Below, piece by piece: positions 10,801 through 13,432 of a stretch of 58,941 nucleotides of DNA. Both the position numbers and the translations under genes were made by a program. Origin of the DNA: Ministeria vibrans ATCC 50519 (taxonomy: Eukaryota; Protista; Filasterea); contig CALSCP010001920.1 of assembly GCA_943704425.1 (NCBI GenBank), forward strand, positions 1 through 58,941, in the 5' to 3' direction. The notes under the pieces are model-generated. The model did not search any database and was not told the origin of the DNA. It saw only the letters and a program-made list of their open reading frames with translations. How positions within the stretch are numbered: the stretch's first letter is position 1; each line of letters begins with the position of its first letter.

Positions 10801-13432
10801 ATTGAGATGGTCGACATGACACACACGCGAACCGTAACCAACTTTGACTTGGTGGAGTTGTCCATTGGCGCGTGTATTTCACGCTCGGACCCTCTGACAT
10901 TGAGCACAACGAGCGCCGTTGAGCTCGAGACGGACACGGTCAAGTTCAATTTGGCCAACGGTGTGGCCGACTGGCCAGTGATGCGTGTGTACGGTGACAC
11001 AGGCGACTACTGTGTGTACGTGAGTCCCGCCGCTACCGACAACATTGTGTATCGCATTACGCTTCAGGTGCGCATTGACGCGTGCTCTGGCATTGAGGTG
11101 GCGGACGGCGTGTCGTCGTCCAACTACCTGCGTTGCATGCAGGAACTTTTTATGCCGCGCGCGCTTCAGATCGCCTACACAAGTAGTGGCGCACTTCTGT
11201 TGGTGGCACTCTTAGTCACCGTGCTGTTGATATTGTGGCGTCGCAACTCAAACATTGTGCAAGTGACGGGACTGGCGACGTTGCTGGTGGTTGCCCTGGG
11301 CATGGCTATAGGGCTCATTGTGCCTATGCTGTGGAATCCCGCCGCAAGCACGGCCACCTGCCTCCTCTTCATGTGGTCCGCTCACATATGCTTTGTACTT
11401 GTCATCACACCCATTGTGGTCAAGCTGCTGCATCTGAAGTCGAGTGAGTCGGTCAACAATGTGAGCCTGCATGTGCCCACTCGCGACACACTGGTCCCCA
11501 CTACAATTGCACTGATCTTTGTGTGCATCTATTTGCTTGTGTGGACACTCGCAGACTCCTCCATTGGTGTGGGTGTTGTCTTTGACACGTCGACCGACAC
11601 GGCCTTCCGTCAATGTTCCTTCTCGTCGTCGGCTGTGCTCGTCATTGTGGCGTTCGAGGCGCTCGTGCTGCTCTGGCTGCTTTACGTGGTGTGGTCGACG
11701 CGCCACATCACGACAATGTTTGGCGAGTCGCAGCGCTACTACGCCGTTGTGGGAATGGTGAGTATTCTTTGCCTTGCGGCGGCCATTGTGTATGCAGTGT
11801 CGCGGAGCGACCGTGTGACAGGCCAGTACAGCGTAGCGGGGGGTGTCATGCTCATTTCGGCGCTTGCATTACTACTGTTCCTCTACATCCCGGTGTGCAT
11901 CAAGATGTTCCGCAAATCGTGGATGGGCGACGGACACCATCTGTTCTTGTCATACGCCAAGGGTGACAAGCAGTTTACAACACGACTGGCGCGTGCTCTC
12001 ACGGAACAGGGTTTGCGTGTGTACGTGGACGAAATTCGTCTTGACGCGGGAGCTGCGTGGCGCAAAGAGGTTGCGCAGCGTCTGCGTGCGTCGCAATATG
12101 TGCTCTTCTTGGTGTCGTCCGAGTCGGTGCAGTCGCGTTATTGTCAAGAGGAGGTTCAGTTTGCCTACGACAATCAGATTCAAGTACGAACGACAATTGC
12201 TCGTAATAATAATAATAATAATAATAATAATATTATTATTATTATTATTATTATTATTATTATTATTATTATTATTATTATTATTATTATTATTATTATT
12301 ATTATTATTATTATGTTTTGCTCTTCTCTATAATTTTATTTTTCTATTATTATTATTTTCTTATTTCTTATCGATCTCTCTATCAATTTGTTTCCCTCTC
12401 CTCTCTCTCTCTCTCTATCACTTTGTTTCTCTCCCTTCTCTCTCTCTTGCCCTCCTTTCTTTTGTTTTGCTTTATTGTTAGATTATTCCTTTGATTCTTC
12501 AGGAATCCTTTCACCAAACCATTGACTCGGGATTGGACATGCTCATCAAGCGTTTCCAATGGACTTCGTTTACGGACACGACCCAGTTCGATGAGAATGT
12601 ACGTCTGCTGTTGAAGGGACTGGAGCGAATGGAGTTGATGCAGCGACAGCAACGCGTTAATGACGGCGTGAAGGAGATGCACGGTGGCGTGGAGATGTCG
12701 TTTGCTCCGTCGCTTTGCCAGTCCGCAGCTCCTTCCAATGGGAGTGTATTGCCGCCAAATTATTTGTCGGAGTCTCTAAAGCCCAAGCAGGTGTTTTTGT
12801 CGTGGGCACACAAAGATGCGAGCTTTGTCAAGGAACAGCTGTGGCCTCAACTCGAGGAAGTCTCCATCGACTGTTGGATTGACTGTATTGGACTGTCGAG
12901 TGGTGCGTCGTGGCGTCGTGAGATTGGCCAGGCCATTGCTGGCTGTCGTCTGCTGTTGTTTGTGCTATCGCCCCGCTCTGCCAACTCACAGTACTGCGCT
13001 GAAGAGGTGCACTATGCACGATCGCAGGGCAAGCAGATTGTGGTGGTTGTTTTTGAGGAATCAACGCGCGTGCTAGCGTCGTTTCACAGCGACCTTGCCA
13101 CGGTCCTTTCGATGTGTCCCGTCATTGACTTTTCGCAGAACCCCGATGCGTTCTTTGCGAACTTTGAGCGTTTGGAGACCCTGATTAAGCGTGCGCTTCC
13201 ACACGCAGATGGAACAGAGGAGGAACAACGGCGCCTGTTAACTCCCACCGACGGCGACGTCTTTCAGTGGCCCGTGTCCCAAATCAATCCAGGCTCATCG
13301 GCGTATGCTATGCACCAAATTTTACCGCAGACGCTTGACTCGGCGGTGGACGTTCGCTCGTACAGCTCGCACATGTCACACGATCAACTGGAACTTGAGC
13401 CAGTCTTTCCAGTCCTTGAAACCGCGCTCTAA
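7851..13432 (+). CDS. Receptor of ~1,658 aa: signal peptide + Pmp/parallel beta-helix-like repeat ectodomain + class C GPCR-type 7TM + two TIR domains
   Basis: Exons 7851-7928, 7999-10125, 10277-10384, 10471-12183 and 12482-13432 join in frame via four phase-0 GT-AG introns. Contains GGAI/FxxN repeats, seven hydrophobic segments at ~11160-11910, and TIR box motifs LFLSYA...YCQEEV and VFLSWA...YCAEEV. Confidence 0.85.
12205..12313. repeat. (TAA)n/(TTA)n microsatellite in the intron that splits TIR1
   Basis: Directly visible. It gives the poly-N/poly-I tail of ORF 10471..12333. Confidence 0.95.

Follow-up and report, generated by a model that had tools for sequence, protein, structure and literature searches.

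A class C seven-transmembrane receptor with a tandem TIR tail in Ministeria vibrans: a candidate receptor-gated NAD+-processing enzyme

Introduction

TIR domains are now viewed as ancient enzymes that process nicotinamide adenine dinucleotide (NAD+), and their switching by surface receptors has become a new question (TLR4 cyclic ADP-ribose (cADPR) report, 2026). This question is raised by a gene of the filasterean Ministeria vibrans ATCC 50519, located on contig CALSCP010001920.1 of the GenBank assembly GCA_943704425.1. The contig was analysed from position 1 to position 58,941 of the forward strand, and this whole stretch of 58,941 nt is referred to as the window. A single gene on the + strand, at approximately 7851-13432, codes in this order for a beta-helix ectodomain, a class C seven-transmembrane (7TM) domain, a tether, a first TIR domain (TIR1), a linker, a second TIR domain (TIR2) and a PDZ-type C-terminus. 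Is the tail of this receptor an enzyme that is gated from the cell surface, as the initial annotation had proposed from the sequence alone, or do its TIR domains serve another purpose? The analysis described here identifies positions 11935-13195 as coding for the cytoplasmic tail of a conserved filasterean surface receptor. As to its candidate function, the preferred reading is that of an enzyme that processes NAD+ under control of the receptor, and the chances of this reading are put at about even.

Results

The two TIR domains and the candidate catalytic glutamate

All searches were made with single exons, and TIR1 was handled as two exon pieces. The receptor tail and the exon that connects it to the membrane are composed of the following features:

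10471-12183, + strand: exon of 571 codons for a beta-rich stalk, the class C 7TM domain (approximately 11158-11910) and, after a short tether, the N-terminal portion of TIR1 (Pfam, AlphaFold2 (AF2), Foldseek)
11911-11937, + strand: tether of about 9 residues from the end of transmembrane helix 7 (TM7) to beta-A of TIR1 (in the AF2 model the helix ends at 480 and the strand starts at 490)
11935-12183, + strand: TIR1 from beta-A to alpha-C (FLSY...VYVD...YCQEEV; TIR_2 E 4.5e-19; phmmer match to AbTir)
12151-12153, + strand: candidate catalytic Glu of TIR1, codon GAG, the second E of YCQEE, aligned to the last E of AbTir WTNYE
12184-12481, + strand: intron within TIR1, 298 bp, GT...AG, phase 0, with (ATT)n and CT-rich sequence
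12482-12634, + strand: C-terminal part of TIR1, beta-D to alpha-E (IIPLIL...GLDMLIKRFQW...), in the last exon, with the conserved motif GL[DE]xLxKR[FY]QW
approximately 12635-12784, + strand: linker between TIR1 and TIR2, about 45-50 amino acids, poorly conserved
12785-13201, + strand: TIR2, a complete domain in a single exon (FLSW...CWID...YCAEEV; TIR_2 E 1.5e-20; AF2 model; VIA-align)
13004-13006, + strand: candidate catalytic Glu of TIR2, codon GAG, at the second E of YCAEE and within alpha-C (model residue 79), aligned to the Glu of PdTIR and of Toll-like receptors (TLRs)
13202-13432, + strand: C-terminal tail ending in E-T-A-L (13418-13432) with the stop codon TAA at 13430-13432, a C-terminus of the class I PDZ-ligand type

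Both domains were matched by the Pfam profile TIR_2 (PF13676), TIR1 with 69.6 bits and TIR2 with 74.3 bits at a cut-off of 28, and chance matches are thereby excluded. The initial annotation had placed two TIR domains at 11935-13195; the motif strings quoted in it were found where it had located them and its estimate of a linker of about 50 amino acids agrees with the measured length, but the intron in TIR1 had been missed.

When the TIR1 exon piece was searched with phmmer, the best match was the bacterial NADase AbTir (7uwg, 8g83; E 6e-06), and it was in this alignment that the second E of YCQEE coincided with the last E of WTNYE. For TIR2, HMMER aligned the second E of YCAEE with the Glu of PdTIR WPQKE and with that of WCxYE in TLR1, TLR6 and TLR15. 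Catalysis by the reference enzymes depends on E642 of SARM1 and E208 of AbTir in this column. The earlier claim that both TIRs keep the alpha-C glutamate is thus borne out by the alignments to AbTir and PdTIR. Of the WCxxE motif that had been cited for it, Cys and Glu are present, and Trp is replaced by Tyr four positions before the Glu.

The AF2 model of TIR2, computed from an alignment of 10 rows, reached a predicted local distance difference test (pLDDT) score of 89.8 and a predicted TM-score (pTM) of 0.87. It has 5 strands and at least 5 helices in a flavodoxin-like alpha/beta fold, and its candidate catalytic Glu lies within the helix formed by residues 74-85. VIA-align comparisons of this model with about 50 solved TIR entries gave Z-scores of 15-18.

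Other positions are conserved as well. In alignment A1, F9, S11, D38, G45, W48, R49 and S73 are invariant and D16, Y75, C76, E78, E79 and A83 nearly so; in the phmmer alignment F9, S11, D38 and G45 match FIS, D and G of AbTir. The roles of the beta-A F-x-S motif, the beta-B Asp and the BB-loop Gly in the pocket are known from published work on SARM1 and AbTir. The aligned sequences demonstrate that the Glu of the catalytic column is retained in each copy of the two TIR types together with F-x-S in beta-A, the Asp at the end of beta-B, the Gly of the BB-loop and S-x-Y-C-x-E-E in alpha-C.

Retention of the Glu extends to all 15 receptor-linked TIR domains that were examined. The motif YCxEE occurs in 10 of 10 receptor TIRs of the Ministeria genome, among them TIR1 of the paralog on contig C2017 and TIR2 of that on contig C2106, where the Tyr codon of YCQEE was read across a phase-1 intron split. 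The Capsaspora TIRs (4 of 4) and the one metagenomic TIR1 have the aligned Glu too; in TIR1 of CAOG_08660 (YCQTE) the neighbouring E is replaced by T and the aligned Glu is retained.

The class C 7TM domain

The Pfam profile 7tm_3 (PF00003) matched amino acids 231-474 of the exon 10471-12183 with E 2.2e-17 (64 bits, cut-off 33.5), and with profile positions 6-250 of 251 the match covers the whole 7TM domain. An AF2 model of this exon showed 7 helices at residues 230-480 and beta-A of TIR1 at 490-494; its confidence is low (pLDDT 59.7) and it was used for helix count and class only. Within this scope, the top 40 Foldseek matches of the model were all class C receptors (GPR158, GABA-B, CaSR, mGlu, TAS1R; E from 1e-4, low global TM-scores). 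The full-length Pfam match and the purely class C top matches uphold the class that had been proposed initially. The passage from the membrane to the first TIR is short and similar among relatives: the tether Trp (W484) is invariant in alignment A2, and in 4 of 5 paralogs the Pfam envelopes of 7tm_3 and TIR_2 are spaced by 17-21 amino acids.

Pfam analysis of the ectodomain returned Beta_helix and Chlam_PMP instead of a Venus-flytrap (ANF_receptor) domain. Its absence does not bar membership in the 7tm_3 family, because GPR158 and many protist receptors of class C likewise lack a Venus-flytrap. The gene falls outside the definition of a TLR, with no leucine-rich repeats (LRRs) found by Pfam, a 7TM instead of a single-pass membrane part and two TIRs; likewise, no Pfam match to ARM or SAM domains was obtained in any exon, so that the architecture is not that of SARM1. 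By family resemblance to class C receptors, dimerization of the receptor and coupling to G proteins may be expected.

Paralogs in the Ministeria genome

The assembly comprises 29.7 Mb in 2860 contigs. A profile search of the contigs yielded seven 7tm_3 loci. Five of these, on C1920 (the window), C2106, C2373, C2017 and C1006, are followed directly by two TIR_2 matches. The five paralogs are collinear in tblastn from the ectodomain through the 7TM domain and TIR1 to TIR2, with identities of 25-61%, and on C2106 ectodomain, 7TM and TIR1 are covered by one unbroken open reading frame (ORF) of 1391 codons. The fusion of 7TM and TIR is accordingly regarded as real, being kept in five paralogs here and in two genes of Capsaspora.

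The intron site after alpha-C of TIR1 is common to C1920, C2373, C1006 and a metagenome contig from JGI (L020). C2106 is without the TIR1 intron and has instead the phase-1 intron in the Tyr codon of TIR2 YCQEE, and C2017 has an intron in beta-C of TIR1; the paralog intron stretches listed are L013 7698-7809 and L015 7453-7566.

The same genome codes for soluble TIR proteins with the Glu motif, namely at C2602 682-2319 (YCIEE, with a weak PB1 match) and at C2128 2121-3194 on the - strand (WCLME), and for a further solo TIR protein on C2643. These soluble proteins are candidates for receptor partners or for independent enzymes. A homologue of the CD38/ADP-ribosyl-cyclase family was found at C1175:521-1333 on the - strand (Rib_hydrolayse, E 1e-33). 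Furthermore, at least 5 loci carry RYDR_ITPR domains of ryanodine and inositol trisphosphate receptors (RyR/IP3R), C1486, C1980, C2497 and C86 among them, one in an open frame of 5560 codons.

Relatives in other organisms and age of the TIR pair

With the 7TM-TIR1 exon as query, HMMER was run against 1.84 billion representatives. Only four of the matches listed cover both 7TM and TIR1. One stems from an independently assembled ENA metagenome and is 99.5% identical to the 7TM-TIR1 exon of C2373, and the JGI contig L020 has the receptor order and the TIR1 intron site of the window gene. The other two are proteins of Capsaspora owczarzaki, both annotated as 'TIR domain-containing protein': CAOG_08484 (KJE89761/KJE89762; UniProt A0A0D2U3H4, in the preprint A0A0D2VIF7), with Pfam matches to Beta_helix, 7tm_3 and two TIR_2, and CAOG_08660 (KJE92002; A0A0D2VNR5), with 7tm_3, two TIR_2 and no Beta_helix match in Pfam. 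A word-based search with the 1391-amino-acid ORF of C2106 was confined in its matches to TIR-WD40 and TIR-TPR proteins of bacteria, without any 7TM-TIR protein, and the Capsaspora genes emerged only in the HMMER search. A protein atlas search with the 7TM-TIR1 exon brought no usable match.

The Capsaspora orthologues share with the window gene the order of a beta-helix or pectin-lyase-like ectodomain, 7tm_3, TIR1 and TIR2, the motif YCx[ET]E in both TIRs, GL[DE]xLLKRFQW in TIR1 and a C-terminal [ST]-x-[VI]; introns part TIR1 from TIR2 in them as well. They differ from it in sequence, with 25-50% identity, and in number, with two genes versus five in Ministeria. C-termini of the form [ST]-x-[VIL] were recorded for the window gene (ETAL), C2373 (ETAL), C1006 (MSLV), CAOG_08484 (ETSI) and CAOG_08660 (GTAV), which suggests that the receptors are anchored or clustered by a PDZ scaffold.

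In the phylogenetic tree all TIR1 domains fall into one clade and all TIR2 domains into another, with support values of 86 and 84 in the Shimodaira-Hasegawa-like approximate likelihood ratio test (SH-aLRT). Since each clade holds both Capsaspora and Ministeria sequences, the tree dates the TIR1/TIR2 tandem to before the split of the two lineages, with both members retained in each. The retention of two distinct TIRs suggests non-redundant roles, for example in an asymmetric pair.

Related receptors with a stalk or beta-helix and a 7TM domain, 650-1659 amino acids long and without TIR, were observed in Pigoraptor vietnamica and Chromosphaera perkinsii. The TIR tail seems to have been gained or retained in the Capsaspora-like lineage only, with truncated transcriptome models being possible elsewhere. 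Beyond Filasterea, the nearest TIR relatives among the matches listed come from cyanobacteria; these proteins combine 3-7 tandem TIR_2 domains with WD40 propellers and have YCxxE, and given these nearest relatives the receptor TIRs could be of bacterial origin.

Structure of the 5' part of the gene and the neighbouring gene

The window is eukaryotic in composition, with GC-rich exons and introns that are AT-, (ATT)n- and CT-rich. The exons end at 10125 or extend over 10277-10384, 10471-12183 and 12482-13432; their junctions are canonical GT-AG, all in phase 0, and the frames are open. Upstream of the 571-codon exon the following features were recognized:

7851-10125, + strand: 5' exon or exons, with ATG at 7851 and a signal-peptide-like start, the beta-helix/PMP-repeat ectodomain in the ORF frame from 7858 and the donor GT at 10126
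10277-10384, + strand: small exon of 36 codons in phase 0 with a further GGA-type PMP repeat (AG at 10275-10276, GT at 10385-10386, open frame)

The ectodomain ORF at 7858-10125 matched Beta_helix with E 2.6e-07 and Chlam_PMP with E 3.5e-04 in Pfam, indicating right-handed beta-helix/PMP repeats, and in tblastn the ectodomain is collinear with those of all four paralogs. The frame that starts with the ATG at 7851 (MIVVLLFALLPLLSS..., 7851-7910) is signal-peptide-like and out of frame with the ectodomain ORF at 7858; the two frames must be joined by a very short 5' intron or by an assembly frameshift. Downstream, a gene assigned by eye to the HSP110/HSP70 family lies at 13596-16111 on the - strand, its exons split by (AAT)n-rich introns. 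It is convergent with the 3' end of the receptor gene, and the two stop codons are about 165 bp apart.

Discussion

A possible mechanism of receptor-gated NAD+ processing

If the tail is a receptor-gated enzyme, the TIRs would act as enzymes and not as adaptors only. A ligand at the ectodomain would rearrange a 7TM dimer, or receptors would be clustered via a PDZ scaffold, and the short, fixed tether would relay the change to TIR1. TIR1 and TIR2 could then pack into an assembly that completes the active sites, as in SARM1, AbTir and the resistosomes of plant nucleotide-binding leucine-rich repeat receptors with TIR domains (TNLs), and NAD+ would be cleaved to an ADP-ribose (ADPR)-type product. 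Judging from other eukaryotic TIRs outside plants, canonical cADPR would be the likeliest product, and it could feed the RyR/IP3R-type channels encoded in the Ministeria genome. The receptor would thus signal via a built-in enzyme, instead of or besides G proteins. For this receptor, dimerization, an assembly of four TIRs and turnover of NAD+ are predictions of the model. A route from cADPR to Ca2+ in Ministeria is conceivable, because the genome encodes both a CD38-type cyclase homologue and RyR/IP3R-type channels, and this evidence is circumstantial.

An active-site role of the Glu agrees with a recent survey of TIR catalysis (Hurieva et al. 2026, bioRxiv 10.64898/2026.04.20.719644). In Table S2 of that work all four Capsaspora TIRs are listed with Glu as their active-site residue, its C-alpha lying 0.56-0.89 Å from the reference catalytic Glu after structural alignment, and these residues belong to the column identified here, being the second E of YCxEE or, in one case, the E of YCQTE. 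According to the same authors, most eukaryotic TIRs other than those of TLRs and IL-1 receptors (IL-1Rs) keep the Glu, and it is missing from most TLR and IL-1R TIRs. Makers of cADPR among the Glu-bearing TIRs include those of S. rosetta, Dictyostelium, Guillardia and Phytophthora as well as animal TLR4 (2026 preprint).

Evidence that weighs against an enzymatic tail

Several observations count against catalysis by the receptor TIRs. Among 471 related TIR domains in the top matches, Glu is found in 94% (444/471), Cys in 90% and Tyr in 71%, with Trp in 17 of 471; because Glu, Cys and Tyr prevail across these mostly cyanobacterial domains, YCxxE is to be regarded as the signature of the subfamily. 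The Glu is its default state, so its presence in the receptor discriminates weakly. All receptor TIRs have Tyr in place of the Trp of WxxxE, a residue that is still aromatic and the norm of the family. To our knowledge, no YCxxE TIR has been assayed. When the family profile was compared with chains in the PDB, the TIRs of TLR15, TLR6 and TLR1 ranked first. The structural Z-scores of 15-18 are tied between Hydra TRR-2, SARM1, IL-1RAcPb, RUN1/RPV1, SPARTA and MyD88, and the fold was for this reason rejected as a means of discriminating enzyme TIRs from scaffold TIRs. The proposal that the TIRs are nearer to the TIR_2 class of bacteria and SARM1 than to Toll thus holds in part only: it is favoured by Pfam and the global search, but neither by the ranking of PDB chains with the family profile nor by the structural Z-scores. 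A profile for the TRPM-type SLOG sensor of ADPR (PF18139) had no match in the genome, in a search whose control was equally matchless. The Capsaspora TIR clusters are marked as outside the assayed set by Hurieva et al. (2026), and when Glu-bearing TIRs were overexpressed in E. coli in that study, a cADPR isomer was detected for 4 of 29 from protists and 12 of 61 from animals (14-20%); this rate is to be taken as a minimum, since oligomerization is required by many TIRs.

Alternative functions of the TIR tail

These same observations feed the alternative that stands up best, in which the tandem TIRs are interaction modules, clustering of receptors nucleates a TIR-TIR assembly that recruits soluble TIR proteins, and the Glu is structural. 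No enzymatic role is established for the TLRs that rank first in the PDB comparison and carry WCxYE, SARM1 and the group of Hydra TRR-2, IL-1RAcPb and MyD88 are equally near in fold, and most of the Glu-bearing TIRs assayed yielded no product. The solo TIR proteins on C2602, C2128 and C2643 would be candidate partners, and the conserved PDZ-type C-terminus points to scaffold-based signalling. On the other side, neither MyD88 nor IRAK is known from Filasterea, and the solo TIRs on C2602 and C2128 themselves carry the Glu motif. Moreover, TLR and IL-1R TIRs are mostly without the Glu (Hurieva et al. 2026), whereas 15 of 15 receptor-linked TIRs retain Glu, Tyr, Cys and the BB-loop Gly despite overall identities of 25-60%. 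A purely scaffolding tail is hence considered possible but somewhat unlikely.

An enzymatic tail could also serve to deplete bulk NAD+, which is a variant of the enzyme reading. TIR NADases of this kind (SARM1, SPARTA and Thoeris-type abortive systems) would kill or arrest the cell when a pathogen or a non-self surface polymer is sensed. The evidence of catalytic competence is shared by both versions, the structural matches include SARM1 and the SPARTA TIR-APAZ (Z 16-17), and a beta-helix ectodomain fits the recognition of polymers or surfaces. Some eukaryotic TIRs, of Guillardia, a rotifer and Latimeria, do deplete NAD+, but most of those assayed do not. Five diverged paralogs with PDZ-type tails resemble a sensory receptor family more than a suicide switch, and the CD38-type cyclase and the RyR/IP3R channels suggest a possible use of messengers, which leaves an executioner role improbable.

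That the fusion is an assembly or gene-model error or its TIR tail a decaying pseudo-domain, as the fragmented assembly of 2860 contigs, the low-complexity intron breaking TIR1 and the 5' join of the 7851 and 7858 frames might suggest, is so improbable as to be negligible, since the exon frames are open across canonical GT-AG phase-0 junctions, five Ministeria loci, one metagenome contig and two annotated genes of Capsaspora have the same order, and a 99.5% identical 7TM-TIR1 exon comes from an independent ENA assembly; pseudogene and misassembly were rejected on paralog collinearity, the metagenome copy and the open spliced frames.

Comparison with known TIR proteins and receptors

The receptor with its candidate enzymatic tail can be compared with several known systems. 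SARM1 has the same TIR fold as the TIR2 model (Z 17.4, root mean square deviation 2.6 Å over 129 residues) and the alpha-C Glu, and its activity depends on TIR-TIR assembly. In contrast to the window receptor, SARM1 lacks a receptor portion in the membrane; it is an octamer controlled through its ARM and SAM domains and contains one TIR per chain, with Trp instead of Tyr. The TLRs (TLR1/6/15, TLR4) are likewise surface receptors with a membrane-adjacent cytoplasmic TIR and an aromatic-C-x-x-E motif in alpha-C; they have an LRR ectodomain, a single transmembrane pass and one TIR, whereas the window receptor has a beta-helix, 7TM and two distinct TIRs.

Plant TNL resistosomes (RPP1, ROQ1) follow a comparable four-TIR logic, since a receptor dimer would present four TIRs. 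In TNLs, ligand-driven tetramerization arranges the TIRs in two asymmetric pairs with two active sites. RPP1, RUN1 and RPV1 match the TIR2 model structurally with Z-scores of 15-17 (17.1-17.2 for RUN1/RPV1). Unlike the window receptor, TNLs are oligomerized by a cytosolic STAND NTPase and not by a 7TM domain, and the plant TIRs form a separate clade. The cyanobacterial multi-TIR proteins with WD40 domains (e.g. MDJ0716374.1 from a Prochloraceae metagenome-assembled genome) provide the nearest TIRs outside Filasterea and resemble the receptor in YCxxE and in having several TIRs per chain; they differ in the absence of a membrane domain, in their WD40 sensors and in an identity of only 26-33% per TIR.

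On the receptor side, membership in the 7tm_3 family is shared with the class C G protein-coupled receptors (GPCRs) mGlu, GABA-B, CaSR and GPR158. Here, however, the Venus-flytrap and the cysteine-rich domain are missing, and the TIR pair replaces the usual C-terminal tail about 9 residues past TM7. A precedent for the fusion of a 7TM domain to an enzyme is RpkA (7TM-PIP5K; PMC3971589). The receptor family is akin both to TIR-coupled receptors and to enzyme-fused 7TM receptors.

In the literature search, no paper was found for the term 'GPCR-TIR', and a search combining TIR domain and GPCR with oomycetes or choanoflagellates returned nothing relevant. Neither de Mendoza 2014 nor the survey of GPCRs among relatives of animals that appeared in eLife in 2025 mentions TIR. 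The only published trace found is the presence of the Capsaspora proteins in the supplementary Table S2 of Hurieva et al. (2026), where they bear the domain label 'GPCR_A; Pec_lyase-like', pectin-lyase-like in both, without discussion in the main text. It may be speculated further that these proteins form a new class of enzyme-linked 7TM receptors, clustered by PDZ scaffolds and with a G-protein-independent output of NAD+-derived messengers from a heterotypic TIR1-TIR2 pair; such receptors would go back to the ancestor of Filasterea and correspond, before animals and without LRRs, to TLRs, with TIR enzymology as the primary output. So extensive a proposal is put forward tentatively and is rather doubtful as a whole.

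Significance

The wiring of this receptor is unusually direct: the TM7 of its class C domain is followed after about 9 residues by the first of two distinct TIRs that were paired early. Even if the TIRs were inactive, the receptor architecture would be a hitherto undescribed one that both the 2025 survey and de Mendoza 2014 pass over. If they are active, the protein would be a GPCR-type receptor with a built-in effector, and messengers derived from NAD would join the known outputs of 7TM receptors. In the stem lineage of animals, TIR signalling coupled to surface receptors would in that case be older than TLRs of the LRR type. With two orthologues in Capsaspora, the family would also offer a compact and genetically tractable system for the gating of TIR assembly by receptor rearrangement at the membrane.

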